DNA of 63,903 nucleotides, counting the filler, from Octopus bimaculoides (taxonomy: Eukaryota), in the NCBI RefSeq assembly GCF_001194135.2. It is 5 parts of 5 records of this genome, joined end to end, with 100 filler letters (N's around TTAATTAATTAA, not from the genome) between each part and the next. Parts side by side here need not be neighbours in the genome. Positions count along the whole stretch, not along the records: positions 30,573 to 55,349 come from NC_068982.1; 4 more parts are not named here. The stretch is one strand, 5' to 3'. Numbering within the stretch: the first letter of the stretch is position 1; each line of letters opens with the position of its first letter. The translations under genes and the position numbers were made by a program. This document shows positions 31,544 through 55,349 of this stretch, piece by piece. The notes under the pieces are model-generated. The model had not been told where the DNA came from. It was given only the letters and a program-made list of their open reading frames with translations, and searched no databases.

Positions 31544-31642
31544 TTTAATAAATTCAATAAGTTTATTGTAAATGTGGGCCCCTTTTGGTAGGAAAAAGCA
31601 ACTTCCTGGACTTTGTTCATGAAAGAAAAACAGTTCTTGTTC
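31544..31642 (-). CDS. TARS1: ThrRS exon 10 [33 protein letters not shown] (last exon visible)
   Basis: tttcag acceptor, AAA/GTAGGT donor, 99 nt, phase 0-0. Confidence 0.96.
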
Positions 31643-34600: not shown

Positions 34601-37600
34601 CTTGAGGTAATCTCCACTACCTCCACAGCCAACCTGATGACCTTCCTGCCTACTGGCTTGCAAACCCTCCGCATCTCACCTTAATGGAATACCACCTTGC
34701 TTCCCACTCATTGCTTTAGCATAGATCCACCAGCTTAACACATTTCCTCTTACTCTAGTACTAACAGATCCACCTGCTTGAATGCTTCTGAGATCAGCCC
34801 CACATCCAGCCTTAGTGATATCACTCTCCTCTCACTCTTATGAAATTATCTACCCTCTCCTTTTGCTCTTGATCCACTGTTTGTATTCTCTCATACTCCC
34901 CTCCTTGTACCGTGAAAGTTCATTTGGGTACTTCACCACCACCCTCTTTGTCTTTCTATCATACTTTAGCTTTGCAACAGCTGGCATAAGGTCACCTCCT
35001 CCTCTCTCAAGTATACTCTCCACACAGTGAAGAGGACTTTTTCTTTACTTTGTTTTGCAAATTATTTTACCTCATTAGTGCCAGGGGCATAAAAAGAAGC
35101 ACTCAATACAAAATGATTGGTGTTAGGAAGGGGTAGAAACCATGTCAAAACTGAGAGACTGGAGCTCAGTGCAGTTCTGCAAGCTGGTCAAATCCTGTCA
35201 ATCTGCCCAATCCATACCAACATAAAAAAATGAGTGAAGATGATGATGATAGTGGTGGTGATAATGATGATGATTTTTGAGTTCCCCCTATTTAGTTGGG
35301 GGGGCTTTTCTCCTTTTTCTGTCTTTCTGTTCTTTTATTGTGCAAGTTATGTGGCAACCTCACTAATGCTGGTGCCAGGAAAAAAGCATCCACTTCACTC
35401 TGTAAAGCAGCTTGGCATTAGGAAGAACATCCAGCTGTAGACACCATGCCAAACCTGATGCTGAAGCTTGATGTGGTCCTGCAACTTGCCCGGATCTTGT
35501 GAAACCATCCAACCCATGCCAGCATGGAAAACAGACAGTAAAGGATGATGATGATCATTAACTTTATCAAGCACTTGGAATCTTACCCACTTAATAATTA
35601 CATGTTTAGAAATATTGCTTGCTGTATGAGATTACATTTCAGATTATAACAATGTGTAATGAAGGAAACAAAATCTTGGAATGAATGAAGCTTTTTCTTT
35701 GTTTGTAGAGCAACCAAGTCTAAATAACTAATGATCAACAAGTCAGCTTTGATTGTAGACTCTTGAGTACCAATAAAAGGTTCGAGGGAAATGATTTTGT
35801 CCATCAATTTCACATATGTTTACGTAGGTAAATCATAAACATGATGAGATAAGAAAATCATGCTTTACTTACCGATATATCGTAGTTGTTGGCGTGGTGA
35901 CTTTCTCATTCAGAATTCTCTGCTTGAATTTGTTATACTAAAGAAAGAGAGGAAGAAAATTGGACAAAATTATCATTAATGCTATAATCCAGATTATTCT
36001 TAGGCTAGCAGGATTCTTTACAGGTCGTGATAAAACAATGAGCATCAGGCTGTAAAAATCCTTCCTCAAATGTTTTCTCATCTAACCTAATCAAGCATGG
36101 AAAAACAGACATCAAACAACAGAAAATCCAAAGAAATTACTGATGGAATAAATGATTTTGCTGTGAAGAAGAAAAGTCAGGCCCTTTACATAGAATCTTT
36201 TGTTGAGCAATTAAAATGTTAGACTTCACTTCCCCTAAAGCAAAGTAATTTATTCAATTTGAGAAATAAGTATATTAATCTAGTCAAAGTGAAAGTAGCT
36301 TTGTTCCAGCTGTAAATACCTTAAACATCTCTAAAAGATCTTCTTTCTTCACCTCTAATCTTTCAAAAGGTTGCTTCTCTTTCACTATTGACTTGACAGC
36401 AGTTTCAATGGCGTTATAATCATTACTCGATACTTGCCTGAAGCAAAAGATAGTATGTAATATAATGGAAGATGCGGAAACAGTTTGATGACTAAATAAA
36501 GGGATAAGTGAACTCGATACAGTAAAGTAAGAGAAAAAATGAAAGATCTTGTGTCAATTTCTATGTTTCAAGTGTAAAGTTATGGTGCAATAGAATGTAT
36601 ATTTTAAATGCGGATATCATAGCAAAATAGGTTTAATTTCAGAGTAGCCATCAGTCAGGAGCCTGCCCTGTGTCAAAGGGTCAGCCTGTTAAGACTCAGC
36701 AATTCCCTCTGTGCTGCATGCATACAATCAGTCAGGCTCTTGTTCCCAATCCATTCTTCCATGGTATCAGTCCACAAATGTCTTTAATGACCTCTTGGTC
36801 TCTTCCCCTCCACACTTTCTATCAGGATTGTAGGTAATGACTTGTGGTACATTGTTATGTCCAAAATACGACAACTTTGTGGACTTGATTCTTGACAAAA
36901 GGTGTCTTTAATTTTCAGCTTTTCTACTATTGTAGCATATGCTGCCCAGTTTTTCCAGCTTAATCTGTCCAATCTGCAAAAGATCTACAACTCAATGGTT
37001 TCCAGCTTTTTCTCCAACATAGTCCAAGTTCTTACCAAGTAGAGGACAATCAGCAAAATATAACAGTTTATTAGTCTCAATTTTAGGTGCAGTGTTCTGT
37101 CTTCTGACATGAAGGTCTTTTTCATACTTATAAATATTTTAGCCTTATTTATTAATTTCTTTTTCACAGTGACCTTCCTGATATATTATGTCCTAAAAAC
37201 TTGAAAGATTTTTTTAATTGTTCAAACTTCTGTCCATCTACCTCTACATTTGCCTCCTTTTGTTCTGTTTTACAAATAACTCACTATTGTCTTTGTCCTT
37301 TTTACATCCATATTCACCAATATTTAAATCTTCCCTATTACTGTGCTCCCTTACAACATGTAATTTCTCACTGCAGGGGTTGACTCACAAAGATTCAAGA
37401 GGAACAGTTTCGGCATCAATCTCATCAGATTAAGATCTGCAAAGGCCACGAGCAATGAGAGAGAGAGAGACACACACACACACACTGACAGAGCTCAGAG
37501 ACCTTGCAGTCTACCAATTTACTACCAGTGTTACACAGAAGAATAAAGAGAAATAATCTAATGCGTACAACTTTCTGTCCCCTATTTTGGCTTGGAGGTG

Positions 37601-40600
37601 GGGGAGGGGAGACATTAACAGTAACAAAAATACATACCCATCGTCAATGAACATGTCATAATAAAATCCTCCCTCAATTGGTGGTCCATAACAAAGGTGT
37701 CCACCATATTTCAGTTCCATGGCCTCTCCAAGAATATGTGCACTGGAATGCCAAAATACTTGTTTCCCTAGAATAAAAAAAAAAAAGAGTATATCAACTA
37801 AATATTGATTTCAAATCTTGGCATAAGGACAGCAAGTTCAGGGGAGGGGTAAGTCAATTACATCAACCCCAGTGCTCAATTGGTACTTATTTTATAGACC
37901 ACAAAAGGATAAAAAGCAAAGCTAACATCAACAGAATTTGAACTCAGAATCTAAAGATGGACAAAATGCCACTAAGCATTTTGCATGCTGTGCTAACGAT
38001 TCTGTCAGCTCACTACTTTATAGCAGTCAAATGTTAACATTACACATGATTGGCACGTGAAGCAGTGTCATGAAATAAACAAAACTTTTCCATAAGTTCA
38101 AATATCTTTGGGACATATTTGACCGGCATAGAGGCCACTTTCACTGCAGTTTGCCATGGAGAAAAATTCTTGCTTTAGACAAAAGCTTTAAGCACCAATG
38201 TCATTTCATAGCTACCACTATGAATTAATATATGCATTTCAAGCTACTTTGCATTCATTAGTATAAAATACCTAGCAGGACAACTAAGAAATGACTGAAA
38301 GATTTCGCTTCCTTATAAAAAAAATCAGTAGAAACCATTCACTGACTGTGTGCTGTGAACACCAAGCTGGGACAAAATATATGGGCCACATATGAAGTAG
38401 TCATCATCATCATCATTGTTTAACGTCCGCTTTCCATGCTAGCATGGGTTGGACGATTTGACTGAGGACTGGTGAAACCAGATAGCTACACCAGGCTCCA
38501 ATCTAATTTGGCAGAGTTTCTACAGCTGGATGCCCTTCCTAACGCCAACCACTCAGATAGTGTAGTGGGTGCTTTTACGTGTCACCCGCACAAAGGCTAG
38601 TCAGGCGGTACTGGCAACGGCCACGCTCAAAATGGTGCATTTTATGTGCCACCCGCACAAGAGCCAGTCCATGGGCACTGGCAACGATAAACAAGTTTTT
38701 TGTATTTAACCCTTTAGCAATCAGATTATTCTGTCAAAATGTAAAGCTTATTTATCCACATTGTTTTGAATCAATCATGCATTATCTCGTAGCTTTGAGA
38801 TGTCAATGATGTGACTATATACTTTTAGAATAACATTGTAGGGTAAGTGTAAGAGGCCAGACCTGGTTGGTTTGGACATAAAACAGGTAAAATATTTGGG
38901 TTGGATAAAGCCAGTTTAAATGTTAAAGGGTTAAATATTGTGACTACAGTGAAATTGTTTAGATAAATAAACCAGATATTTTTACCTTCATCATCATCAA
39001 ATTTTAAAAACTTGATGGTGCAATCTTTTTCCAGTGGGCGTTCGATATCCCACAATTCATCATTCACCTTGGATATCACAGTGTTATCAGCCAGTCCCTG
39101 ACTGAAAAATACAACAAACATTATCTTTAATATATATATATATATAATGTAGTTCCATGATGGTAAAATCAACAAAAAAATGTATTCCATCTGGTGAGAG
39201 ATAAATATTATATAATATACACGTGTTTATATATGTTACTAATAGTTTCAAGTTTTAGTTCATTATGATATGTAGTTTGTGTTTGATGAAAATGTTTGAG
39301 GTATTTCTCAACATATGAAACTACTAGTAGCCCACATAAACATAAACATGTATTGTGTATATTAAATAATATATATATATATATATGAGATGGCAGAATA
39401 TTTGCAGAATAGGAAAATGTCATGCATTATTAGATCAGTCCCCCACTATCACAGAGGATCTCTTCTACAAAAGCACATCCTTAAAACAGTTAAGATTATA
39501 TTCTGATAACTGACCCTTCTCTTCAGTGCCAGAAAGTACTTCAACACCCAAAGTTTACTGAAATTCTACAAAGCTCAGTACTGCTGTCACATTTGTGACA
39601 GGGCTGCTACTGTATACAAGACTGCTTTTAAAAAAAGGACTGACTGGCATGAAGGTGCCTAGCTTAGTGGTTAGGATGTTGAACTAATGATCGTAAGATT
39701 GTGATTTCGATTAATGAACTGGGCAATGCGTTGTGTTCTTGAACAAAACATTGAGCCAGCAAAAATGAGTATTCCAGTGATGGACCGTCTGTCCAGTGGG
39801 GAGTATAAATATACCAGAGAATCCAGAAAACCTGCCCTATGAGTCTATGTGACACAGAAAGGAGTGACTGGCATGACATTACTCACAGACAGCCTCCAGC
39901 TTCTGACCCACAGGCTTTTCTACTGCTGCTATAATGGCCTTGTAGCTGGCCAGGCTCATGTTACTCTCATACCACTAACCTCTTTCCCCCTTTCATTACC
40001 TTTATTGCATCCAACCCACAGGTTCCATGCTAACTGCTACACCTAGTTCTCCCTTTCCAGAATATCAGCCCTCTGGAAATCTCTCCCTGCTCATGTTGAC
40101 TTAAAAAAGGTTCAAGAGGAATATTAATGGTAAGGCCTATGAAGGCCAGGGACTATCTCCCACCTCCCTCCAGACCTGGCATTCATTATTTTAATGTCCA
40201 CTTTTCCATGCTTGCATGGGTCAGAAAATCTGTTGAGCCAAATTTTTTATGGCTGGATACTCTTCCTGTTGCCAACCTTCACCTCTTTCCAAATAAGGTT
40301 ATAATTTCTCATGACTGGACATGTTTCCATGGAAGATTGGAGACAAAGGACACTGTTTGCATGACAGTCATCTACAACTATCACATGAACTTAGGGCAAG
40401 GAGACAGTAATGCACACATATGCTTAAATTCTGTTTTTTTTTAAAGGATTTTTCGCATTTTGCATTAATGCAGGCATGTAAGTAATTTATTCATTATCAA
40501 ATATAATAGAATAAATTATTTACATGCTTTTAAGTTATGAAACAATTTGTCGTGATATTAGAATTTTCTTATTGTTAAATGAAGTTTCATCAAACTATTT

Positions 40601-40616
40601 TTCTGTCATTTGTGAC

Positions 40617-40657
<41 letters not shown>

Positions 40658-43600
40658 TTAGTAAATGGAGTAATACACATATGTTAAATGAATTCTTTTA
40701 TTTCAACATATGTTTCGAAGATTACAAATGGTTCCTTCTACAGGAATAGGTGATGTTGATAAAGATGTAATCTTCTCTTCAGGGAAATACATAGGAACCA
40801 GCTTAACCGTAAGACATTTTAACCGAATGTGATAACTGTAGGTAGAGAATATTGCTACGTANNNNNNNNNNNNNNNNNNNNNNNNNNNNNNNNNNNNNNN
40901 NNNNNNNNNNNNNNNNNNNNNNNNNNNNNNNNNNNNNNNNNNNNNNNNNNNNNNNNNNNNNNNNNNNNNNNNNNNNNNNNNNNNNNNNNNNNNNNNNNNN
41001 NNNNNNNNNNNNNNNNNNNNNNNNNNNNNNNNNNNNNNNNNNNNNNNNNNNNNNNNNNNNNNNNNNNNNNNNNNNNNNNNNNNNNNNNNNNNNNNNNNNN
41101 NNNNNNNNNNNNNNNNNNNNNNNNNNNNNNNNNNNNNNNNNNNNNNNNNNNNNNNNNNNNNNNNNNNNNNNNNNNNNNNNNNNNNNNNNNNNNNNNNNNN
41201 NNNNNNNNNNNNNNNNNNNNNNNNNNNNNNNNNNNNNNNNNNNNNNNNNNNNNNNNNNNNNNNNNNNNNNNNNNNNNNNNNNNNNNNNNNNNNNNNNNNN
41301 NNNNNNNNNNNNNNNNNNNNNNNNNNNNNNNNNNNNNNNNNNNNNNNNNNNNNNNNNNNNNNNNNNNNNNNNNNNNNNNNNNNNNNNNNNNNNNNNNNNN
41401 NNNNNNNNNNNNNNNNNNNNNNNNNNNNNNNNNNNNNNNNNNNNNNNNNNNNNNNNNNNNNNNNNNNNNNNNNNNNNNNNNNNNNNNNNNNNNNNNNNNN
41501 NNNNNNNNNNNNNNNNNNNNNNCGGGTGGCACATAAAAGACACCATTTCAAGCGTGGTCGTTGCCAGTATCGCCTGACTGGCCTTCGTGCAGGTGACACG
41601 TAAAAGCACCTACTACACTCTCTGAGTGGTTGGCGTTAGGAAGGGCATCCAGCTGTAGAAACTCTGCCAAATTTAGATTGGAGCCTGGTGTTGTCATCCG
41701 GTTTCACCAGTCCTCAGTCAAGTCATCCAACCCATGCTAGCATGGAAAGCGGACGTTAAACGATGATGATGATGATATATATATATGTTGTCTTCTTTCA
41801 GTTGCTGTCTACTAAATCCACTAACAAAGCTTTGGTTGGCCTTAGCTATAGTATAAAATAATTGCCCAATTCCACACAGTGGGACTGAATCCAAAAGCAT
41901 GTGAGTAAAAGCGAAAAAAAAAAAAAATAAAAAATAAAAAGCCAGTCCTTATTGAAGTTGAAATTCCAAGGTGTCCAAGCCAATCCTTACCTGATTCCTT
42001 TAGCAATCTCATAGGGAGTTGTGCGCCATGATTGACCTTTTACTTCTTTACCATCAGGCAACGTAATTGTAATATCTACACTTGGTTGAGCTGCCAACCA
42101 ATTATTGTAGGACTCCTTCCATTTATTCCACAAATCTAGTCGGGTTTGGATGTAATCAGGAGGTGGTTTTACCTGAAACAATGAATTTATTTTAATTATT
42201 TTATCTTTATATTAGATATTAACAAAACAAGGTCATAAATTCAAATCTTCTTACTGCTCTACCCCCCACTGCCTTTGTTTTTAATTAAGCTTGTAAATAA
42301 TGAAGAATTTAGTAAAATAACTCTGTTGTTATTAATCTGGTACTTGGAACATAAATATAGAATTCTGATAGAAAGTTTTGATTGGGCTAGTATCAAAAGG
42401 GTAAGTGGTGGAGGCGCAATGACTCAGTGGTTAGGGCAGCGGACTCGCGATCATAGGATCAGTTTCGATTCCCAGACCGGGCGTTGTGAGCGTTTATTGA
42501 GCGAAAACACCTAAAGCTCCACGAGGCTCTGGCAGGGGATGGTGGCGAACTCTGCTGTACTCTTTCACCACAACTTTCTCTCACTCTTACTTCCTGTTTC
42601 TATTGTACCTCTATTTCAAAGGGACCAGCCTCGTCACACTGTGTCACGCTGAATATCCCCGAGAACTATGTTAAGGGTACACCTGTCTGTGGAGTGCTCA
42701 GCCACTTGCACATTAATTTCATGAGCAGGCTGTTCCGTTGTTTGGATCAACTGGAACCCTCGACGTTGTGCCAACAACAACAACAACAACAACAAAAGGG
42801 TAAGTAGCTTTCCCTTCCTCATACATGTGAAGGAAGGGGCCAGTATTGTTGTTAGATGGTCACTGAAATAGATTACAAACATAGTGAGAGGCAGTGTAGA
42901 TGTTTAGAGGGAGGGACATGATTTTACTTAGAAATGAAATAGTTAAACCAAGTACAATCTTTTATTTGTTCCAGTCATTATACTGCAGTCGTGCTGGGGC
43001 ACCGCCTTGGAGAATTTTTAGTCAAATGAATTGACCCCAGTACTTACTATTATTCTTTTTTTAAGCCTGATATTTATTCTATCAGTCTCTTTTGCTGAAC
43101 TACTAAGTTACAGGGATCTAAACACACCAGTTGTCAAGTGGTAGTGGAGAACAAACAGACACAAAGACACACTATATATATATTGGATAATGGAACTGCA
43201 ACTATAACATCCAACATATTTTTATTTTTATTCTCTTAGTTCCTTTTATACTTCTTATTTCCATCCTTTTCTAAAATAACTCCTTATATTGAACTCTACT
43301 ATTTCCTCTATTTAACCATCTCACATCATCTCTGATGAAGGGATAAGACTTTCTCTTTTATAAATGTCCTGAAAATTCCGCACAGCTTTGGCATTGTTGT
43401 CTCATTTTATTTAACACACACACATACAGTGGACTTATTTCAGTTTATGTCTCACAAGGCTTTGGTCAGTGCAAAGCTATAGTAGAAGACTATAGCATGC
43501 TGTGGGACTGAACCTGAAACCATGTGGTTGGGAAGGAAGCTTCTTACCACACAGTCACTATATTTTAAACACATTTTCAATGTAAGTCTTTATCAGGATT

Positions 43601-43864
43601 AGAATGTGAGTTACACATTGTGTCATCAATGAACAGAAATAAAGACTGATGATGATGTCAAAATCTAACGTAATTTCAGTATTATAAATCCTAAACCACA
43701 CAGACACACTTGTGCCTATGCATATTAGCAGAATTCCCATCCAAGCTAAGAGGGTGGAAAAAAATTAATGTAAAATAAATATGAAATAATAAAAAAAGTT
43801 TACCTCTGAACAAGTGTTGTTCTTATTCTTATCCTCTTTTGATTTTTTCGTATTTTTAGATGCC

Positions 43865-43896
<32 letters not shown>

Positions 43897-46800
43897 CACT
43901 TCTATAATTATTTGCAGTAAAACAGTTCAAATAGGATATGGAAGAAATTTGATTAAAAAAATATCAAAAGAACAAAGACAAATCTCTTTTCCCTGTTTCA
44001 ACCTGAAACTCACTGAAACCAAAATATAACAACTGACTTGAGTCCAAGGACTAAGAGGGCTAGTTGTCCAATTGTCATGATATAAAACTGAGACCACAGC
44101 ATTTCCATCTGAACAGGGCGCCAGTCTGTTGCAGGGTTATTTATTTACAGTTGATTGGACTGGAGCAGTGTAAATGAAGTGTCTTTGCTCAAGAACACAA
44201 TACACTGCCTGGTCCAAGAATAGAAACAATCTGACAATCAACAGCCTAACCACATGCTTTCATATAAACTGTCAAGTATAGCAAGACTTTAACGAATAAA
44301 TAAATAAATAGAAAGAGAAAGAAAGAAACAAACAATAGCATTATTACACACCAGACTAAACTAATTGAACAATCACTACAAAGTGACCAAGTAAAACTGG
44401 AAAATTGAAGAAAAAATGCCTACTCATAGCTATGACAACTCCCTCAGATAACAGTATGTCTATGAAAGAGGTTCACATTTTAGTTAAGTATACAGAATAA
44501 CTAATAATAGAAATATCAAAAACTAAACAAATCCTGGTAACATGGAATGATATGACAGGGTGGAGTTTTTAGTATGCTGATGATTTGGCCTTATTGCCTG
44601 GACATTCAACATATTTTGGTAACAGTGCTTTTTGGCACTGAAGCCAAATGCACATACATACATGTATGACCTACCCACCACAACAGAATTGAGATCCTAA
44701 AACCAAGGTGCCATGTAAAAAGCACTGGTGTGGGTGCTGGTGCCTTGCAAAAATCACCCAATATGCTCTGTAAAGTGGTTGGCATTAGGAAGGGTATCTA
44801 GCTGTAGAAACGAAGCCAAAACAGATGATGGAATGTGGTGTTGCCCCTGGCCTGGTCAGTTCCTGTCAAGCCATCCAACCCATGGATGCAAGGAAAACGG
44901 ACATTATATGTTGATGATGATGATGTGAGAGAGAGAAAGAGTGTACACATGCAAACGTAACTAGATGCTCACAAACAGAGAGAGAAAGAGAAACATTACA
45001 ATTTATTAATTGAACATGACTGACATAAACAGTTTCCTTCTCCTCATCCACATAACATAAAGCGAAGTATGCTCATACACATAAACAGAGAAAGAGATGA
45101 AAGGAAAACAAGAGAAACATTAAAATGTCTGATGTCAAATAAGTCAGCATTGAATCAGTGATACTAAAATGGCTGAACTACTTATACTCCTAGTAGCAAT
45201 CAGTACAATGAGATAAAACATTCCTTTCTACTAGAGGCACAAGACCTGAAATTTTGCAGGAGGGATGGAATAGATGATTACATCAACCCCAGTGCTCAAC
45301 AGGTACTTATTTTATTCACCCCCGAAAGGATGAAAGGCCAGGTCAACTTTGGTGGAATTTGAATTCAGAATGTAAAGACAAACAAAATGCCACTAAGTAT
45401 TTTACCTGGCATGCTAATTATTCTGCCAGCTCACTGCTTTAACAGTCAGATAAAATATTAAAATTACAAATAACCCTAAGCTGCTAAGAACACAAAATAT
45501 TGTATTTACAATTGTCTACAGCAGTGGTTCACAACCAGGGTCCACATGACCCTTGGGGGAGTCTACACAAGATTTTATAATTAATGTTTACGTACGATAA
45601 ATTGGTTATACTTCTACAATGTAAAAAATATTTCAACAATTTTTTAAATACAATTTCTAGTGTTGTTGCTGTCACTTCTATCAACAAACCATTTGCTCAC
45701 TTCATGCTTTCAAAGATGCATGAGAAAAGGATCCCTTATTTTGGACAAAAAAAAAAAAAAATGTGAGGGTTAAGAGATAGAAAGGACAGCTCTCTGTAAA
45801 ACAGAGCTTCAATCATCATCATCATTTAACATCTACTTTCCATGCTGACATGGGTTAGATGGTTTGACAGGAGCTGGCAAGCTGAAGAGCTGCCTGGGCT
45901 CCATGTCTATTTTGGCATGGTTTCTGTGGCTGGATTCCCTTCCTAATGCCAACCACTTTACAGAGGGTACTGGGTGCTTTTATGCAGCACTGGCATGGTT
46001 GTTTATGTGGCACCGGTACAGATCCTTTTTATGTGGCACCAGCACCCACGAACCTGCAATATTAGGAATGCTCAGCTGGAGAGGAATGCAGGGGACATGC
46101 CTGTATGCAAGGACAACCATGCTTTTACTTAGCTTGATGTGTTTTCGCAAGCACAGCAAGCTGCCAGGAGTCTCGGTTCCCTGTCATCCCTTCTGAGAGT
46201 TCCAATGTTTGTAGATCCTTTCTTACCATATTTGTTTAACCCATGCTAGCATGGAAAAAAATGGATGTAAAAATGAATTAACAAAAGAGCACCAGGCTCT
46301 AAGAAAAGTTACTGCCATCATCATCATCATCGTTTAACGTCCGCTTTCCATGCTAGCATGGGTTGGACGATTTGACTGAGGACTGGTGAAACCGGATGGC
46401 AACACCAGGCTCCAGTCTGATTTGGCAGAGTTTCTACAGCTGGATGCCCTTCCTAACGCCAACCACTCAGAGAGTGTAGTGGGTGCTTTTACGTGTCACC
46501 CGCACGAAAACGGCCACGCTCGAAATGGTGTCTTTTATGTGCCACCCGCACAAGNNNNNNNNNNNNNNNNNNNNNNNNNNNNNNNNNNNNNNNNNNNNNN
46601 NNNNNNNNNNNNNNNNNNNNNNNNNNNNNNNNNNNNNNNNNNNNNNNNNNNNNNNNNNNNNNNNNNNNNNNNNNNNNNNNNNNNNNNNNNNNNNNNNNNN
46701 NNNNNNNNNNNNNNNNNNNNNNNNNNNNNNNNNNNNNNNNNNNNNNNNNNNNNNNNNNNNNNNNNNNNNNNNNNNNNNNNNNNNNNNNNNNNNNNNNNNN

Positions 46801-47249
46801 NNNNNNNNNNNNNNNNNNNNNNNNNNNNNNNNNNNNNNNNNNNNNNNNNNNNNNNNNNNNNNNNNNNNNNNNNNNNNNNNNNNNNNNNNNNNNNNNNNNN
46901 NNNNNNNNNNNNNNNNNNNNNNNNNNNNNNNNNNNNNNNNNNNNNNNNNNNNNNNNNNNNNNNNNNNNNNNNNNNNNNNNNNNNNNNNNNNNNNNNNNNN
47001 NNNNNNNNNNNNNNNNNNNNNNNNNNNNNNNNNNNNNNNNNNNNNNNNNNNNNNNNNNNNNNNNNNNNNNNNNNNNNNNNNNNNNNNNNNNNNNNNNNNN
47101 NNNNNNNNNNNNNNNNNNNNNNNNNNNNNNNNNNNNNNNNNNNNNNNNNNNNNNNNNNNNNNNNNNNNNNNNNNNNNNNNNNNNNNNNNNNNNNNNNNNN
47201 NNNNNNNNNNNNNNNNNNNNNNNNNNNNNNNNNNNNNNNNNNNNNNNNN

Positions 47250-47289
<40 letters not shown>

Positions 47290-50200
47290 CTGACACATAC
47301 ACACACACAGCTGTGTTTGAGTATACAGTAACAGCATGTCATAATCGAATTATTCAACTGTTGATGTACTATTTGCAATAATTTCTCACATTGGCAAAAG
47401 GCTAGATATTTATAAAGGACAGATAAACATAGCCATGGCTATATGGTTAGCAAGTCTGCTTTCTAACCTAATGCATGACATCTTGAACAAGTCACTTGTA
47501 CTACAACCTTGTGAATGGATTTGGCAGATGAAAACTGAAAGAAGCTTGTCATATATGAGCGTATGTATTTGTGACACCGTGTCTCCAGTTCATGGAACTC
47601 ATAACTGTTATGCAATGTTAAAGCAAGGACATAAACATATTCTTTTACTTGTTTCTGTCATTTGACTGCAGCCATGCTGGAGCACTGCCTTGGAGGGTTT
47701 TAAATGAACAAATTCAGCCCAGGACTTTTCTTTTTAAGCCTAGTACTCCTTTTGCTGAACCACTAAGTTATGGGGATGTAAACAGACCAACATACACACA
47801 CACATATATATATATATTTATACGTAATTAGGATAAGGTCATTATTTAACGATTTATTAGTGGCCAGCATACTAACAAGACCATAATGGTTAATTTATAT
47901 TTAAGTATAATTATAAGGGCATTGGAACGTGCTTCTTTCAGTTTTCATCTCTCATATACACTGACAAAGCTTTGGTCAGCCCAGAGATATACGAGTAGTA
48001 GAAGACATGTGCCCAAAATGATACACGGTGGAACCAATCCCACACCATGTGGTTGAGAAACAAACACCTTAACCATACAACTGCACCTATTTCTTTCTCT
48101 TATGAATGTTATCAACCCTTCTGAAACCCAACCCTGGTTCTAAGATACAACCTCCTCGATTTAAAATAATCTTAACCCATTACCTACCATAATTCTATTA
48201 ACTGGAATTTTTTTATGAAACTTTGATTTCTAGCATAAAACAGCCTTAGAAACACGCTGGAATGATCAAAATAACATTTTAAATAGAAATAAGCAAGATA
48301 TTGGGTGAAATTAGCAAACCTCATTTGAGTATCAGAGAAATATACCTTGTAGATATAGCAAAAAGGTTAGATATGTGTAAATATTGACAGATAATTACGA
48401 AATTTGTAATTTTTAAGTGATCTCATATGAGATCACTGGTAGGTAATGGGTTAATTACAACCACCCATCGAAATTTTAAGCTAATTAATGTCCTAAACAT
48501 CAGCTATTCTAACATTAGTTATTTTAATAAATTCTTTTATTTTCAATATTAATTAAAACAAAGACTGAGTGGTTAAGAAACTTGTTTTATAACCATATGG
48601 TTTCGGGTTCAGTTCCAATGTGCGACACCTTGAGCAAGTGCTTCCTACTATAGCAGAATTTGGTAGATGGAAACTAAAAGAAGCCCATCATGTGCATGTA
48701 TATGTGTGTCTGCAAATTCATGAGTGTGTGTTTGTGTGTACCCTTAGAATCATGCAAGAGATGTTTGTTTCTAGCCTTGTATGAAAAACATGTTTGGCCA
48801 AGGAGAAATATTACTTTGCTTGGAAATAGTTGAGGGTTAACAACAGTAGAAAACTTACCTCAACAAATTCCACCTGACTCATGCAAGCATGGAAAAGTGA
48901 TCATATGATGATGATGATGATAATTGCATGTATCAATTAGGATATGTGCTTTAATTTATTTTAAGAATCGTCAAGATTTTCTAAAGTTTCAAGAAAATAT
49001 TGGTTTCAAATTTTGGCACGAGGCCAGCAAGTTCATGACATTGAACTCCAGTACTCAGCTGGTACTTATTTTATCAACCCCGAAAGAACAAAAGGCAAAG
49101 TCAACCATGGCAGAATTTGAACCCAGAACATGTAGACAGATGAAATGCCACTTAAGCATTTTGCCCAGTGTGCGAGCAATTCTGCCAGCTTGTTGCCTTA
49201 GAGCTCAATAGTATATTACCTAACTGTTTGTTTTAGTTTAACAACCTGATGTTTGCAACAGCATGTGATCAGTGATAATGTGTGTGTGTTGGCACTCCAT
49301 CGCTTACGACGTCGAGGGTTCCAGTTGATCCAATCAACGGAGCAGCCTGCTCGTGAAATTAACGTGCAAGTGGATGAGCACTCCACAGACACGTGTACAC
49401 TTAACGTAGTTCTCAGAGATATTCAGCATGACACAGTGTGACAAGGCTGACCCTTTGAATTACAGGCACAACAGAAACAGGAAGTAAGAGTGAGAGAAAG
49501 TTGTGGTGGAAGAGTACACCAGGGTTCACCACCATCCCCTGCCAGAGCCTCGTGGAGCTTTTAGGTGTTTTCGCTCAATAAACACTCACAACGCCCGGTC
49601 TGGGAGTCGAAACTGCGATCCTATGACCGCGAGTCCGCTGCCCTAACCACTGGGCCATTGCGCCTCCACGATCAGTGACAATAAACACTAGCTAAAAACT
49701 ATGCCTCAACAGTATACTCATCAGAACCAAAAAGTACTTCACCTTGAGAAGTTGGCAATGTTCTACATAGTCAACATATTACAACTTAACTTTTTAGCAT
49801 TTAAACTGGCCATATTTTACCAAAAATATTCTACTGTTTTATGTTCAAACTGGCCAGATATGGCCTCTAACACCAAATCTACCATATCATTCTAAAAATT
49901 AAGTTACCTCATTGAAGTCTTAAAGCTACAAAATAATGCATGGTTGATAAAAAAACAATGTGAATAAATAAGCATTATGTTTGATAGAATAATGTGAATG
50001 CTAAAGGAGAAAGGGTGCTACATGGTCACTCAATGCTAGAAATAGCAGCAAAATACTTCTCAAACCACATCCTACCATCCTAAAAAAAGGAAGAGGACAA
50101 TGACATATTCTTTGATATATCTTGATACTAAACGAGTTAGTGTACAGCTAGAATATGTTTGATCACAGGGTTGTCTAATCACAGCTTATCTCAATAACAA

Positions 50201-53200
50201 TTGATGTGAAATATCTGAAAGTGACAAGATGTTTATAGTTTCTATAGCTGGACAACTTTACAGTGTGAACCAGGTGTTTTTTTCTTCTTTTTCATGATCC
50301 AATCATTCAAAAATTCATCACCAATTTTGAGTTCACCTCAAACTTCCCTGGAGATCATTCCAAGTATTCAAGACTCTCACAAAACGAATATTTCCTCATG
50401 TTCAGTTTCGATTAAAGTTTGTATATTTTTTTTTATCATACTGCTTTTTCTTCCTGTTCACAAATTTCTCTGACATAGATTTTGAGGGAACCCGTGGAAG
50501 AGGTAGGCCCAGGAAGACCTGGGCTGAGGTGGTGAGGCAAGACCTTCGTACATTGGGCCTCACCGAGGCGATGACTACTGACCGAGACCTTTGGAAATGT
50601 GCTGTGCGTGAGAAGACCCGGCAAGCCAAGTAAGATCGTTGCCAGTGCCCCTGGACTGGTTCTTGTGCGGGTGGCACATGAGATGCACCATTTTGAGCGT
50701 GGCCATTGCCAGAACCGCCTGACTGGCTCCCGTAGGATTTTCAAACGAGATCGTTGCCAGTGCCCCTGGACTGGCTTGTGCGGGTGGCACATAAAAGACA
50801 CCATTTCGAGCGTGGCCGTTTTCGTGCGGGTGACACGTAAAAGCACCCACTACACTCTCTGAGTGGTTGGCGTTAGGAAGGGCATCCAGCTGTAGAAACT
50901 CTGCCAAATCAGACTGGAGCCTGGTGTTGCCATCTGGTTTCACCAGTCCTCAGTCAAATCGTCCAACCCATGCTAGCATGGAAAGCGGACGTTAAACGAT
51001 GATGATGATGATGATGATGATGTTAAAACCTCTCATGGGCAAACTTTCATTTTATGATCTAGAAAGTGAAAACACTGAACTAGACAGAGAGCAGCACAAT
51101 AAAATGAAAGTAAAATAATGTTCAGTAGTATTTGATAAAAATCAGCAATAAAATAAAACTAAATGAATTCTCATGAAAAAGAAAATTATTTTGGCACCAC
51201 AAATACTGTTAATACCAAAAAAACTATTGGATTCTATCTGGAGTTAGTGGAATAGCAGAGTCTTAAATGTGTATCTTGTATGAAAGTATATCCAGTTTAT
51301 TGCTCATCATCACAAGGCATGCCCTGCCAGAGATCTGATCCGTAACTACCCTACAATATACCTTCCAACTATTGCTAAATTATTATCATCAACATTTAAC
51401 GTCTGTTTTCCATGCTGTGGCAGGGGTTGAACAGTTTTTGCCAGTATCACTCACTGATAAACTATGCAGCTTCACACGGAAACACCATAGAAGGGATAGG
51501 CAGTAAAATTGACTACAAACATTGTCATGAATGGGATAGGAGGCAATCTCTTTAACATCTATTTACAGGAATTTTGCTGATGTTGTTCTTTATAAACAGA
51601 ACACATTTATACATGAGTCTTATCCTCTCACAATTTGGTTTAATTTAAAATAAAATCTTATAAAGCATTACACATAAGTAAGTTTGGCTTATCTAATTTT
51701 TTGGGGGCTACTGCAGTTTCACACCTCACCTTGCAAAATGCATTTTTTTGAAAACATTTCTTCAGATTCCTAGGTTTTAGATGTCGGGATTACGAGTATG
51801 CAAAAAAAAAAAAATTCAAAATTTGGATTTTTGGAGGATATTGCAGAGCACAAAAAAGAAAAAAGGATTTCTTATTCCAGTTGATGATAGGAAAGAAAAA
51901 AACTTAGTTACCATTGAGCTGGGATCAATAACATATTCCAATAAATGGAGTTCGTATAAGAACATTGAAGAGAAGCTATGTTTCAAACATTATAATGTCA
52001 ACCATTCTAATAATTTCGTTGACCCCATTACTGGTTGCCATACAAACTCAGTAGAAGGTATGTATGCAAACGCTAAAGCCAAATTTAAACCAATAATGGA
52101 CCCACAGATAGACAACTAATTGACCTGCATTTACCTGAATTTATGTGGGCCCAGCGATTTATCATTTTTGGTGTTACATTGTCTCGTATATCTATAAATC
52201 GTAGATCGTATATTAGATATTTGTTTCACTTTCTATTTTTAATGTATTGTTGTATAGTGAAGAGAGGAAATGTCATTAGAGCAGGTATGTAAAGAGCACT
52301 TTCTATGTTCATATGGCTAAACAATAGAGATTGTTAAAATCCCGTATTTTTCCACGTAGATTAAAAAAAAAAAATTAGTAACATTTTGAAAACGTGTTTT
52401 TTTTTTTTTGCATATAAAATCTTATAAATAAAGCATCTAAAACCTAGGACAATATCAGTTGATAAAAATATTTTTGTTTACCCTAATTTATACAATAGAA
52501 ACATCAAAACTATATAATGTACACTCCCGTAAACATATTTGTGTAGAAAGTCATTTAAAAATATGTATTTCAAAAAGTGTTATGAGGAAAAACAGCCGGG
52601 AGGGTATTGAAAATTATCTGAAACTCCACTTAAAAATTTATTAACGTTACCGACAAAATCGTGACCTACGCCTTCGAAAACCTATCTACAAAATCTAATT
52701 AAATAATGCGCATTTTTGCAGACAGTTATGAGAAAACGGAGTCGGGTAGGGGCACCAAACTGCAGTTATGCTACAGAGGTATCACGAAGGGCCTGCGTGG
52801 AAGCCCAACCGAGTTCTTTTATAGGGCTTAGGAAAACCGAAGGACCACTGCAGTGTGTGAATCTGAGAGGAGGAATATGCTGAGCAAAATCATAATTAAC
52901 AGATATTCTCGTATTTTCCTTTTTCCAAAACCAGGAACTTTTCAGCACCCCTCGTGTATGTGTATTCTTTTATGTAGGTTTCCTTTTGTTTATGTTCCGA
53001 AATATATTTTCAGTTTCAAAGAAAACAATTCTTTCCCTTCGATTTTACTAACGAGTTTCCAGCTGGGGACAGTCTCTGCTGAGTACAGTGGGTTCATTTT
53101 CTGGATCGTAAAACAAAGACTACTTCTTTCATGTTTCCATAGAATCTGTAAATTGGTAAAAAAACCTGCTTCCTAAGCACTTCCTCATATACCACAAGCT

Positions 53201-54220
53201 CCGTAGATCTACATTGTACATTTTCTACCATTTCGATGTACTTTACGTTGTACGAGTGTCGTATTTCAGGTGCAGCCTTAACTAATACTGTGTACTATGT
53301 TTTAATGTCTTCGTTTAATGTGCTGAAAGACCCCTTTATAAGTCCCACCAACCTGTGGTTCTTTATATATTTTCTCTGGAGTTTAGGGAGAACTTGACGT
53401 AGGAAATGAATAGCGACCATTCCAGTTGTGTTTGGAATTCAATGTCTCTAACCTTAGTTCAATTCGATGAGGGGCGACCTTGGGGCTAAACAATAATGCC
53501 GGAATGTGACAGACTTCCCTTTAAGTCAAATATGTAAGACATAACTAAACATAATAGATATTTCGCTGACCTCAACATAAACCTGTCCACGTAAGTTAAA
53601 GAAAAACAAATCAATTGATCAATACATATAGAGAAAGAAAGAAAAAAACTTATAAAATTGATTTTTCGGTGCTTTTAGGTAGTAAATCGTTACAAGTTGG
53701 ACGTATTTCTTATTGCATTTTTTGCCTTGCTGTGTTTTTTTTTTTAAATATACATAATGAAATTAATATTTCGGGTACGATAAGAGAACGAATTATAACA
53801 GTATGAGGCGACGAATAAAGAAATGGTGGGAAGTAGCATCAAAATTATTATTAACCAAGCAAAACAGTTAGTTGAAATAACTAAATCTACTACAGGGATC
53901 ACACACAAATTAGAGTCGAGCAGAAAGGAGAGTGTATAACATATATATATATATATATGTACATAAATGTATGTAAAATCTAAGGAGGCAATATCAACAC
54001 ACACCGACTGAATGACGAGAAACTCACACACACCCTAGTTAAAGTCTTCGCGTATCGCAATCCTATTCTCTGCGACAACGAAGAAAGACGTGTCCAGGAA
54101 AGCATATTTGAGTTTTGCTAAATTAGTAAGAAGTGTAAAAGTTTACATAATCCTGCATGCCTTTTTCTCTCCGGAAACTTTCAACTCCTCCATCGGTTTC
54201 GTCAGCACTTCGTCAGCCAT
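31544..54220 (-). CDS. TARS1: Threonyl-tRNA synthetase (eukaryotic cytosolic-type ThrRS), 5' half only; 10 coding exons, 1056 nt = 352 codons
   Basis: Exons assembled by hand with AG/GT boundaries (first donor GC). Phases chain without a break and give the TGS domain (TLPDGK...[23 protein letters not shown]), editing domain ([33 protein letters not shown]) and start of the catalytic core ([30 protein letters not shown]). These match human TARS1 as I recall it. Confidence 0.97.
32951..33335 (-). mobile_element. SINE-C
   Basis: Same family; TSD CCCCACCCATGTT. Confidence 0.9.
33407..33553 (-). CDS. TARS1: ThrRS exon 9 [49 protein letters not shown]
   Basis: ctgtag acceptor, CGG/GTAAGT donor, 147 nt, phase 0-0. 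Confidence 0.97.
33762..33976. repeat. Degenerate 21-24 bp minisatellite (CATGTAGCTTTATAGTTATGATAA-like)
   Basis: About ten imperfect units in ThrRS intron 8. Confidence 0.85.
34247..34325 (-). CDS. TARS1: ThrRS exon 8 (R)[26 protein letters not shown]
   Basis: gaccag acceptor, AAG/GTAATT donor, 79 nt, phase 2-0. Contains the DLCRGPH editing motif. Confidence 0.97.
35873..35937 (-). CDS. TARS1: ThrRS exon 7 [21 protein letters not shown](R)
   Basis: ctttag acceptor, CG/GTAAGT donor, 65 nt, phase 0-2. Confidence 0.96.
36320..36437 (-). CDS. TARS1: ThrRS exon 6 (G)[39 protein letters not shown]
   Basis: cttcag acceptor, AAG/GTATTT donor, 118 nt, phase 2-0. Confidence 0.96.
36640..37170 (-). 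pseudogene. RTE-clade LINE ORF 3' fragment, degenerate
   Basis: LKLRLINCY...[11 protein letters not shown]...RLSW...SVEGKRPRG. Confidence 0.7.
37638..37767 (-). CDS. TARS1: ThrRS exon 5 (G)[42 protein letters not shown](G)
   Basis: ttctag acceptor, GG/GTATGT donor, 130 nt, phase 1-2. Contains the editing-domain HxxxH motif. Confidence 0.97.
38400..38690 (-). mobile_element. RTE 3' UTR copy
   Basis: Same family, with (CAT)n at the left end on the plus strand. Confidence 0.85.
38706..38934. mobile_element. piggyBac-type MITE
   Basis: TTAA-CCCTTTAGCA ... TGTTAAAGGG-TTAA. Confidence 0.8.
38986..39101 (-). CDS. TARS1: ThrRS exon 4 (S)[38 protein letters not shown](G)
   Basis: tttcag acceptor, G/GTAAAA donor, 116 nt, phase 2-1. 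Confidence 0.97.
40699..40789 (-). ncRNA. Type I minimal hammerhead ribozyme motif, sense within ThrRS intron 3
   Basis: Minus strand reads TATTTC-C-CTGAAGA-GAAGATTACA-[39 nt]-TGTAATCTTC-GAAAC-ATAT-GTT-GAAATA. Intact CUGANGA and GAAA cores, perfect 10-bp stem II, 6-bp stem I with one extra C, palindromic stem III loop. Confidence 0.75.
41523..41776 (+). mobile_element. RTE 3' UTR copy
   Basis: Same family, (GAT)n tail, emerges from the N gap. Confidence 0.85.
41991..42172 (-). CDS. TARS1: ThrRS exon 3 [15 protein letters not shown]...[12 protein letters not shown](S)
   Basis: tttcag acceptor, AG/GTAAGG donor, 182 nt, phase 0-2. Start of the TGS domain. Confidence 0.97.
42407..42792 (+). mobile_element. 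SINE-C
   Basis: Same family; TSD CAAAAGGGTAAGT. Confidence 0.9.
43185..43415 (+). mobile_element. Penelope-like fragment P2 nested in the central microsatellite of a SINE-A copy
   Basis: TCTCTGATGAAGGGATA...TGTCCTGAAA at 43329-43374. Splits a minus-strand SINE-A into two halves. Confidence 0.45.
43804..43863 (-). CDS. TARS1: ThrRS exon 2 [20 protein letters not shown]
   Basis: Long poly-T tract plus CAG acceptor, GAG/GTAAAC donor, 60 nt, phase 0-0. Lys-rich linker that joins exon 3 in frame. Confidence 0.85.
46316..46554 (-). mobile_element. RTE 3' UTR copy
   Basis: Nearly identical to the reverse complement of 50770-51010; runs into the N gap. Confidence 0.85.
49280..49669 (-). mobile_element. 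SINE-C
   Basis: Same family; TSD GATCAGTGA(T/C)AAT. Confidence 0.9.
49786..50008. mobile_element. piggyBac-type MITE, same family, reverse orientation
   Basis: Reverse complement of the 38706 family; right end degenerate. Confidence 0.6.
50484..51022 (+). mobile_element. 5'-truncated young RTE LINE (ORF C-terminus, repetitive 3' UTR, (GAT)n tail)
   Basis: [49 protein letters not shown] (stop 50631-50633). The GATCGTTGCCAGTGCCCCTGGACTGG unit is duplicated in the UTR. Confidence 0.85.
51705..52775 (+). mobile_element. Degenerate Merlin (IS1595/ISXO2-like) DNA transposon
   Basis: ORF remnant [12 protein letters not shown]...[24 protein letters not shown]. Inverted ACTGCAGTTT near both ends and inverted CCTAGGTTTTAGATG subterminal copies. 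Confidence 0.7.
54028..54105 (-). CDS. TARS1: ThrRS alternative exon 1b, putative mitochondrial targeting peptide [26 protein letters not shown]
   Basis: ATG at 54105-54103. 26 codons with 4 R + 1 K, no D/E, rich in S/T/L. Ends in phase 0 at a consensus GTGAGT donor (54027-54022), in frame with exon 2. Confidence 0.78.
54161..54220 (-). CDS. TARS1: ThrRS exon 1a (cytosolic-type start) [20 protein letters not shown]
   Basis: ATG at 54220-54218 in good context (caacATGG). 20 codons, acidic/Lys-rich. Phase-0 junction at AAG/GCATGC (GC donor). Confidence 0.75.
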
Positions 54221-54238: not shown

Positions 54239-54257
54239 TGCGCATGCGCTACCGGAA
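54239..54257. promoter_or_regulatory. ThrRS proximal promoter: NRF-1-type palindrome TGCGCATGCGC plus adjacent ETS-like ACCGGAA
   Basis: GCGCATGCGC at 54240-54249, about 20 bp upstream of the exon 1a ATG; ACCGGAA at 54251-54257. Motif match only. Confidence 0.6.
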
Positions 54258-54773
54258 CACTAGTTACTTGTAATATCAGTTAATAAAAAAATTAATCTGT
54301 GTAATAAACTGTATTAATTGCATCAGATTTACCTATTTTTAACCAAGTCGTCAATAAATAAGTAAAAATAAAAACAAACGCATTTACAGTTTTATAGGTT
54401 TTCAAGAACAATCTATTAAATAAGTATCAAGCTTTTAATATATGTTGTATTTAGTTGCTTGAGGTGAGTGCAAAACCTTTCATACTCAGAACATTAAATT
54501 GAAGTACAAATAATGTACAGCGAGGGGAAAACACGGAATTCATAAAATATTACATTCAAAGAAAAGCATAACAAATTAATAAAACGTATATGTAGTTCTT
54601 TTTCCTTCAGCTAGCACGGGAGAGAACTCTGAGCATATTTCGGTTTTATTCTGACTTCCTCGACACAGCAATGGCTTTTCCGTACTTACCAAAATAATGT
54701 AAAGAAACCACAAAATAAATGTACTTGATTGTACACTTTTTTTGTGTAGGAAAATAGAATTGATTAATAAAGT

Positions 54774-55349
54774 TGTGGTATTATGGGCTGTGATGAGCTG
54801 TGTGTTGTGGTGGAGAGGGGTGAGGCAAACAGAGGTGAAGCCAGACCGGAAGGGTCAGATCGGAAGTCGGCGACACGCGGTCGAAGGCTAGCACGTGGAG
54901 TCAGTCAGAAAACAGCGACGTTACGAGAAAGACGTGTTCTGATCAGGAGCGATCGTGTACTCCGCTGCGGTCGGCAAGGTAAGGTCCAACGTTTCATTCT
55001 GTCCTTTTGCTTCTTCCTCCATCTCACCCATAAGACAAAAAATTATGAGTGTAGTCCGGATTTCTAGTGATATAATTAAACCGTTTTGCGGCGACACGGA
55101 CGTGGTCGCATGGCTAAAGAAGATGAAGCTGGTCGCGAAACTCCAAGGGATATGCGACTTGGCAAGTTTTCTACCGCTCTACTTGGATGGTCCGGCGTTG
55201 GCGCTATTTTTAGAGATGGAAGAGAGGGACCAAGTTAGCGCGGAGAAAATAGAAATCCGCTTGATGGAGGCCTTCGCAGAAGGAATGTTTGAGGCGTACG
55301 CTCGCCTGGGGAGAGCGAAGTGGACCGGCGAACATGTTGACGTGTTTGC
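54774..55349 (+). mobile_element. LTR (54774-55037) plus gag-like ORF start (ATG 55045), truncated by the assembly spacer
   Basis: Segment bounded by TGT..TTATGGG / CCCATAA..ACA. Uninterrupted ORF MSVVRISSDIIKPFCGDTDVVAWLKK...PLYLDGPALALF...YARL resembles a retrotransposon gag. GC-rich with CpGs intact. Confidence 0.7.

Follow-up and report, generated by a model that had tools for sequence, protein, structure and literature searches.

How does an animal with a single gene for an aminoacyl-tRNA synthetase provide the enzyme to two compartments? Non-vertebrate animals must supply both cytosolic and mitochondrial translation from one threonyl-tRNA synthetase (ThrRS) gene, and we examined how this might be achieved at the ThrRS locus of Octopus bimaculoides. 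For this we used a 63,903-nt stretch of DNA from the genome of this species (NCBI RefSeq assembly GCF_001194135.2), referred to here as the window, and all coordinates count along its whole length. The 5′ part of the ThrRS gene, with the first ~356 residues, lies on the minus strand of the part from 30573 to 55349. We think it likely that the first exon of this gene carries two tandem 5′ splice sites (donors) from which the cytosolic and mitochondrial forms of the enzyme are made, with an upstream open reading frame (uORF) in the mRNA of the mitochondrial form.

Two 5′ splice sites in the first exon of octopus ThrRS

The features of exon 1 and of the acceptor to which it is joined are listed here, where a slash marks an exon boundary.

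54240-54257, minus strand: candidate core promoter motifs, a GCGCATGCGC palindrome (54249-54240) and TTCCGG (54257-54252), 20-37 nt upstream of ATG1
54220-54218, minus strand: ATG1, context aacaacATGG
54161-54220, minus strand: coding part of exon 1a, ATG1 plus 19 codons; N-terminus of cytosolic ThrRS, or codons 1-20 of the uORF in any mRNA that skips the GC donor
54155-54160, minus strand: upstream 5′ splice site of GC type, AAG/GCATGC, after codon 20, last exon base 54161, phase 0
54143-54145, minus strand: TAA stop, read in the sequence, that ends the 25-codon ORF of ATG1 when the GC donor is unused
54106-54142, minus strand: 37-nt spacer from the uORF stop to ATG2 (26-55 nt in other species)
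54105-54103, minus strand: ATG2, in frame +1 relative to ATG1, 37 nt past the stop
54034-54105, minus strand: coding part of exon 1b, ATG2 plus 23 codons, a predicted mitochondrial presequence; the start of XP_014788792.1 (A0A0L8FLF0)
54028-54033, minus strand: downstream 5′ splice site of GT type, AGG/GTGTGT, after 54034; the donor of the public models
54022-54027, minus strand: in-frame alternative donor GTGAGT (TGT/GTGAGT), 6 nt beyond; in no model
43896-43868, minus strand: run of 29 T, followed by ACAG before 43863; the shared exon 2 acceptor, read in the sequence
43863-43804, minus strand: exon 2, phase 0/0, 20 residues

Exons 2 to 10 were found with tblastn as a guide and by inspection of splice sites. 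The sequence from ATG1 to 54161 joined to these exons is identical over 352/352 residues to UniProt entry A0A0L8FLI0, the cytosolic form of O. bimaculoides. The sequence from ATG2 to 54034 joined to the same exons is identical over 356/356 residues to A0A0L8FLF0 (XP_014788792.1), the mitochondrial form of this species. The identity of the window exons to O. bimaculoides ThrRS models (356/356) places the gene among the class II, TARS1-like ThrRSs, and ThrRS homologues carry PF02824, PF07973, PF00587, and PF03129. For the full-length protein homologues, the search was made with a 602-residue chimeric query consisting of the window exons and the C-terminus of the Lymnaea homologue. The O. vulgaris/sinensis RefSeq isoforms X1 (XP_029655742.1) and X2 (XP_029655750.1) carry the same two N-termini as the O. 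bimaculoides isoforms. No second cephalopod ThrRS was found among the best 120 protein matches, where there was one cluster per species. The public isoforms and RNA-seq contigs from a relative show two mRNA forms with 5′ ends that differ by splicing and with downstream exons in common. Because both isoforms match public models, the GC junction is already in the public annotation. The new elements are the conservation of an uncompensated GC donor across phyla and transcripts that read through it.

Exon 1a begins identically to A0A0L8FLI0 and O. vulgaris XP_029655750.1, contains five acidic residues, and has homology to the MA[DE]NVA...KK start of ThrRS from other phyla. The 24 residues of exon 1b include five K+R and no D+E, and are amphipathic with a high helical hydrophobic moment. 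By this composition, exon 1b is a typical predicted mitochondrial presequence. This role had been proposed in a preliminary description of the same DNA, and the composition supports it. After the presequence, the first 140 residues of the mitochondrial form contain no internal Met.

The intron that starts at the upstream donor runs from GCATGC to TTTACAG and has GC-AG ends. Since the intron and exon 2 both open with GCAT, other registers were checked, and only register 0 gives legal GC...AG ends. The two donors of exon 1 are 127 nt apart and share one acceptor (43864/43863), the polypyrimidine tract of which is an uninterrupted run of 29 T (43896-43868, minus strand). The junction made by the downstream donor, TLTR/ASKN, is found in models of O. 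bimaculoides, O. vulgaris, and Argonauta and in squid-like transcripts. The preliminary description had placed this junction at 54028 to 43863, which needs correction, as the public models use 54034 to 43863. We rejected TGT/GTGAGT, after 54028, as the presequence donor, since none of the cephalopod proteins seen has the Val-Cys that this site would add.

In the genome, exon 1b directly follows exon 1a and there is no cassette exon between them; the choice is one between two 5′ splice sites. The layout is also not one where the presequence AUG lies upstream and in frame: in octopus the cytosolic AUG1 is upstream, a stop lies between the two start codons, and their frames differ. Reading the sequence again confirmed that skipping the GC donor leaves a 25-codon uORF that ends at the TAA at 54145-54143, with ATG2 37 nt further on in a different frame.

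Donor strength was compared with a position weight matrix (PWM), used as a guide only. The GC donor AAG/GCATGC scores 1.1 bits, which is the lowest value for all used donors in the gene. Whether the last base is C or A, this donor matches 5/9 consensus positions, and the compensated consensus AAG/GCAAGT scores 5.5. The GC donor is weak and uncompensated, and it is not close to the consensus of U2-type GC-AG introns. The octopus GT donor AGG/GTGTGT scores 5.0-7.2 bits (7.2 for the site at 54028-54033), the nine downstream constitutive donors score 5.6-11.6, and exon 1b donors across species score 1.9-7.2. Thus, the earlier picture of a weak GC donor set against a strong GT donor is right about the first site and wrong about the second, which is also weak.

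Other donors for exon 1a were tried and rejected. ATG/GCTGAC, GAA/GTGCTG, and AAA/GTTTCC are in phase 0, score from -8.4 to -0.4, and are in no model. In particular, AAA/GTTTCC scores -3.4 and would remove the conserved LKVSGEKK. TAT/GTAAAC is in phase 2, would bring a stop into frame as exon 3 begins, and is likewise in no model. The GTTTCC and GTAAAC sites are those that the preliminary description had named as other donors that cytosolic transcripts might use, and these results speak against both.

Conservation of the exon 1 layout and transcripts that read through the GC donor

We compared the genomic ThrRS loci of two gastropods (Elysia crispata and Lymnaea stagnalis), an oyster (Crassostrea angulata), an annelid (Owenia fusiformis), and a sea urchin (Diadema antillarum). 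We also carried out a pattern scan of metagenome contigs, which gave 28 matches, one of them a true metazoan ThrRS (L024). The exon 1 sequence of this contig is MADNVAAGVQKLAINDDKK/GCATGA, and its presequence ends before GTTCGT. In Elysia, Lymnaea, Crassostrea, Owenia, Diadema, and L024 alike, the orthologous position holds an AAG/GCATGA donor; octopus has GCATGC.

These six genomic lineages follow the same plan as octopus. With A at -3 and G at +4, the context of ATG1 is strong in octopus and the other six alike. ATG1 is followed by 18-20 codons of an acidic MA[DE]NVA...KK peptide before the donor. A spacer of 26-55 nt then leads to ATG2 with a 24-25-residue, acid-free amphipathic presequence, and a weak GT donor (GTGTGT, GTTTGT, GTTTGC, or GTTAGT, and GTTCGT in L024) follows, with phase 0 throughout. 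The stop is a TGA at positions +4 to +6 of the GC donor itself in 5/6 aligned genomic species, in L024, and in transcript contig L012. The uORF has 19-21 codons in other species as compared with 25 in octopus. Annotated proteins also use the GC junction, which is DNKK/KSGKG in Elysia, EGQK/GNEGGG in Owenia, and DKPK/ETVAS in Diadema X2. Diadema X1 has RMSV/ETVAS.

In a six-species alignment of exon 1 (A1), the only long invariant run is AAAGGCATG, which contains the GC donor. Positions +3 to +6 of this donor (ATGA) are invariant in 6/7 genomic lineages, whereas the partner GT donor drifts. As a comparison, GC donors in general make up <1% of donors, are enriched at alternative splice sites, are usually compensated, and are poorly conserved, with 5/26 common to C. 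elegans and C. briggsae (PMC2490688, PMC7242645). Because GC donors normally flip between GC and GT quickly (PMC2490688), the conservation of the one in ThrRS is unusual. Caenorhabditis GC donors are mostly unconserved between species, but the ThrRS donor is conserved across phyla. The tandem-donor arrangement is ancient, of at least bilaterian age. It has probably been kept by selection, since one gene must supply both compartments.

The remaining candidates for the invariance of positions +3 to +6 are that they may provide the in-frame TGA, may be bound by a GCAUG-binding protein, or may improve the fit to U6. No conserved RNA structure was found at the donors in six species, where minimum free energy z-scores for the region from ATG1 to the second donor were -0.3 to +0.9, and donor accessibility had no consistent pattern in the six. 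Additional GCAUG motifs did not cluster in any species over the region from -300 to +600 nt. A function for the AUG within GCAUGA was rejected, as the ORF it opens is not conserved; it is mostly 5-11 codons long, out of frame over ATG2 in Elysia and in frame in Lymnaea.

Transcripts from relatives of the octopus contain both junctions. In a squid-like cephalopod, the cytosolic contigs L005 and L006 read GATAAAAAG/TCTTCAAAA, with the exon 2 side opening TCTTCA, and the mitochondrial-form contigs L003 and L004 read ACAATAGG/TCTTCAAAA. The oyster contig L007 reads TCTAAAAAG/AGTTCC at a place where the oyster genome has AAAAAG/GCATGA. The use of the GC-AG junction in mRNA is thus seen both in public models and in RNA-seq contigs of relatives. 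The proposal that exon 1a is joined to exon 2 through a GC donor stands on the models of O. bimaculoides and O. vulgaris/sinensis and on these cephalopod and oyster contigs.

Two contigs of the mitochondrial form, from two non-cephalopod species, retain the GC donor in unspliced form. L012 contains AAAATATGGATATATCTTCAGAGAAAAAG-GCATGAAGAATTTTTTG and continues through ATG2 into exon 2. L013 contains GTTTCCGATGACAAAAAG-GCAGGGTG, with GCAGGG at the site, and also continues through ATG2. In both contigs the downstream donor has been used and every later intron is removed, and they represent mature mRNAs. It follows from their read-through that the 3′ end of exon 1a and the stop are present on at least part of the mitochondrial mRNAs, and that the upstream ORF is partly a real uORF there. 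These contigs support alternative 5′ splice sites within one exon, and this, with the contiguity of exons 1a and 1b, upholds the earlier preference for such sites over a cassette exon. With the GC donor in the orthologous position in six further genomic lineages, and with two transcripts that read through it, the tandem layout is more than a chance occurrence.

Some further observations concern the two N-termini. The mitochondrial presequence is unusually conserved across phyla, with 24-25 residues, no acidic residue, and the pattern ML/FSxR..L.R.xKR.G..Y/F.R, where slashes separate alternative residues (octopus, L001, L002, L008, L009, L010, and L024). In land snails (Stylommatophora), ThrRS is represented by two paralogs that lie on separate contigs, namely P0190 and P0205 in Bradybaena, P0199 and P0219 in Arion, and P0065 and P0226 in Candidula. 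Each paralog keeps one N-terminus, either MA[DE]NVA... or MFSxRIxLLHIAKRLG.... These sequences support a lineage-specific duplication that split the two exon 1 alternatives between genes, in parallel to vertebrate TARS1/TARS2, and back the assignment of both N-termini. The opposite layout, with the presequence first and in frame with a second Met (MAD... or MAS...), is found in the sponge Amphimedon and in JGI/ENA sequences (P0011, P0016, P0019, P0074, and P0086). By analogy, this layout fits alternative initiation as in C. elegans. The 27 other contigs from the pattern scan (L014-L041 except L024), at least some of them from human gut, share one peptide that starts MAENVARIKAYLAVNGGK and is followed by GCATGA. 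They appear to come from a bacterial gene that matched the pattern by chance and has no relation to ThrRS.

A model for the choice between the two isoforms

Transcription of octopus ThrRS probably starts near the two motifs upstream of ATG1. From the consensus sequences of these motifs, we take the GCGCATGCGC palindrome to be of NRF-1 type and TTCCGG to be of ETS/GABP type. A similar sequence, CATGCGCA, occurs upstream of oyster ATG1 (L008 ~2970-2983) and in the 5′ untranslated region of a squid-like cytosolic transcript (L006 5-14). These motifs suggest a conserved TATA-less promoter upstream of ATG1. A GTAAGT near 54688 (minus strand) may belong to an upstream non-coding exon of ThrRS.

In the model, two weak donors would compete for one strong acceptor. 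When the upstream GC site (after 54161) is used, exon 1b would leave with the intron and AUG1 would start the cytosolic enzyme. When the downstream GT site (after 54034) is used instead, a further 127 nt would be kept. AUG1 would then open the 25-codon ORF, which stops 37 nt before AUG2, and AUG2 would start the presequence-bearing mitochondrial enzyme. By homology with the read-through transcripts of other species, octopus mitochondrial mRNAs would start upstream of AUG1, so that a single promoter and a uORF could account for both forms. The weakness of the GC donor would let a fraction of transcripts reach the downstream site. The strong AUG1 context, found in each of the seven genomic lineages, would commit most scanning ribosomes to the uORF. 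Synthesis of the mitochondrial enzyme would then depend on reinitiation or leaky scanning and proceed at a reduced rate, which would suit a smaller mitochondrial demand. By analogy with let-2 of C. elegans, the best explanation for the conserved C at +2 is that a GT would make the upstream site always win and delete the presequence exon from all mRNAs.

Several dual-localised synthetases offer comparisons. In zebrafish, alternative splicing of the one hars gene yields both cytosolic and mitochondrial HisRS, and the mitochondrial mRNA has the exon 1 AUG followed by a stop (Waldron et al., 2017; PMC5608375). Octopus ThrRS resembles hars in having a cytosolic AUG in exon 1, a predicted short uORF in the mitochondrial mRNA, and a second AUG for the presequence form. 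It differs in that hars uses a 309-nt cassette exon with ordinary splice sites, whereas ThrRS has a 127-nt extension of exon 1 with tandem donors, the upstream one of GC type. According to the account of human KARS1 in PMC8251883, the cytosolic form joins exon 1 to exon 3 and the mitochondrial form includes exon 2, which contains the targeting signal (Tolkunova et al., 2000). As in KARS1, one gene makes both forms of ThrRS, but through alternative 5′ splice sites and not a cassette exon. The comparison with KARS1 in the preliminary description was therefore apt, and hars is closer still. To our knowledge, no GC donor has been reported for KARS1.

For ThrRS itself, C. elegans tars-1 is a single gene that serves both compartments from one mRNA with two in-frame AUGs, and was stated to be the first ThrRS for which a mechanism had been demonstrated (Guo et al., 2023; PMC10196762). 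There the presequence comes first and the choice is made by alternative initiation. By contrast, in octopus the cytosolic AUG comes first, a stop follows, the presequence AUG is in another frame, and the choice would be made by splicing. Human GARS1 is dual-localised through upstream ORFs and start-codon choice, as cited in PMC5608375 and PMC10196762 (Alexandrova et al., 2015). This is alternative initiation on one splice form, unlike the alternative 5′ splice sites of ThrRS. Drosophila ThrRS is listed only as predicted to be dual-localised (PMC4826098). The closest precedent for the donor is in intron 10 of C. elegans let-2, where, as described in PMC2490688, C at +2 of a GC donor keeps the site weak and a change to GT abolishes regulation (Farrer et al., 2002). 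The ThrRS donor resembles it in the conserved +2 C, the weak 5′ splice site, and the alternative splicing, but let-2 chooses between mutually exclusive collagen exons under developmental control whereas the ThrRS donor would select a targeting signal. We found no description of a GC-type tandem-donor arrangement in ThrRS in the literature searched, with most subscription journals outside its scope.

Several points weigh against the tandem-donor model. The PWM used for donor scores is generic, with frequencies typical of metazoans in general and not trained on octopus. AT-rich sequence can be expected to offer a stop shortly after any donor that is skipped, and the octopus TAA alone says little. 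The RNA evidence consists of Logan RNA-seq contigs from relatives, and the octopus junctions are those of public protein models. L012 extends 29 nt and L013 18 nt to the 5′ side of the donor, with AUG1 outside both contigs. L003 and L004 break off into Illumina adapter at 23 and 49 nt 5′ of AUG2. Both ends lie downstream of the GC donor and fit an internal transcription start site (TSS) as well as they fit low 5′ coverage. If mitochondrial-form transcripts began at such a TSS, lying between the GC donor and ATG2 or in exon 1a, there would be no AUG1 uORF, the ratio of isoforms would be set mainly by TSS choice, and the GC donor would matter only for upstream starts. Start sites are usually dispersed at TATA-less promoters of the NRF-1/ETS kind, the adapter-joined ends of L003 and L004 lie at about +8 and +34 past the donor boundary, and contig L011 starts inside the spacer. 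We nonetheless regard such a start as rather unlikely to be the explanation. L012 and L013 run through the unspliced GC donor into exon 1a. With k=31 for the Logan assembly, L012 starts about where the branch to the cytosolic form would be expected to interrupt the graph, and the adapter ends, at two places in two samples, look like low coverage. The conserved GC donor and its adjoining stop are also easier to explain if read-through mRNAs matter.

The ratio could instead be set by a trans-acting factor, for example of RBFOX type, that binds GCAUG(A) and blocks U1, so that tissues with a high mitochondrial demand would make more use of the downstream donor. RBFOX proteins have GCAUG as their core motif, and ATGA at +3 to +6 is invariant in 6/7 lineages despite its departure from the compensated GCAAGT. 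However, the base before GCAUG is G and the preferred base is U, GCAUG does not cluster in the region from -300 to +600 nt in any species, and L013 has GCAGGG. A regulated switch of this kind seems improbable to us. Far less credible again is the idea that the GC junction is an artefact of annotation or assembly and that cytosolic ThrRS comes from another donor (AAA/GTTTCC, or AT/GTAAAC with an unseen exon) or from a second gene. GC donors are rare and there are assembly gaps in the window, but independent RNA-seq contigs contain the junction, and so do the gene models of many species. The two donors fail on the grounds given above, the mitochondrial form lacks an internal Met in its first 140 residues from which a TGS-bearing cytosolic enzyme could start, and the best 120 matches contain no second cephalopod ThrRS.

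If the tandem-donor model holds, tandem 5′ splice sites in exon 1 would be a different and much more widespread solution than the alternative initiation of C. elegans (PMC10196762). ThrRS exon 1 would be a clean natural test case for weak GC donors that permit balanced alternative splicing. It would also offer a mutable handle on mitochondrial translation capacity in molluscs, annelids, and echinoderms, through a +2 C-to-T change, the stop, or AUG1. In addition, annotation pipelines that forbid GC donors would miss the cytosolic isoform of an essential enzyme. A more speculative extension, which we consider doubtful, is that AAAG/GCAUG(A) is a crippled 5′ splice site more than 500 million years old, overlapped by the stop of the cytosolic frame and by a GCAUG protein-binding motif. 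It might tune the mitochondrial-to-cytosolic ThrRS ratio by tissue or stress through splicing and translation in animals with a single gene, and vertebrates and land snails would have escaped it by duplication.

Other features of the ThrRS region

The remainder of the gene within the window is as follows.

43864-54027, minus strand: intron 1 as counted from the GT donor (start 54160 from the GC donor), with repeats, probable transposon debris, and an N gap
42172-41991, minus strand: exon 3, GT-AG intron
39101-38986, minus strand: exon 4, GT-AG intron
37767-37638, minus strand: exon 5, GT-AG intron
36437-36320, minus strand: exon 6, GT-AG intron
35937-35873, minus strand: exon 7, GT-AG intron
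34325-34247, minus strand: exon 8, GT-AG intron
33553-33407, minus strand: exon 9, GT-AG intron
31642-31544, minus strand: exon 10, GT-AG intron

Exons 3-10 (31544-42172, minus strand) encode the TGS domain, the second additional domain, and the start of the catalytic core. The O. bimaculoides ThrRS models (P0192, P0300, P0301, and P0302; 656-672 amino acids) are without ~45 residues after ...EFIK that are found in O. vulgaris (P0179 and P0297; 714 and 718 amino acids). At least one exon just downstream of this part of the window seems to be missing from the O. bimaculoides assembly or models. There are two N gaps, at 46555-47249 (695 nt, intron 1) and 40862-41522 (661 nt, intron 3), in which small exons could hide; the public protein models need none.

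Copies of an interspersed repeat lie in the introns in both orientations, at 46334-46462 (minus strand), 50867-50995 (plus strand), 41630-41740 (plus strand), and 45833-45952 (minus strand). The repeat probably represents a SINE-like element. Within intron 1, an ORF (51781-52119, plus strand) has a weak match to an ISXO2/IS1595-type DDE transposase (PF12762, E 7e-4, 20 bits against a cut-off of 27) and is probably transposon debris. Upstream of ThrRS, a divergent ORF of at least 131 codons (54955-55349, plus strand) runs off the edge of this part of the window and had no match in a Pfam scan. It is adjoined by a CpG-rich stretch at 54830-54990, ~600-750 nt upstream of ATG1.

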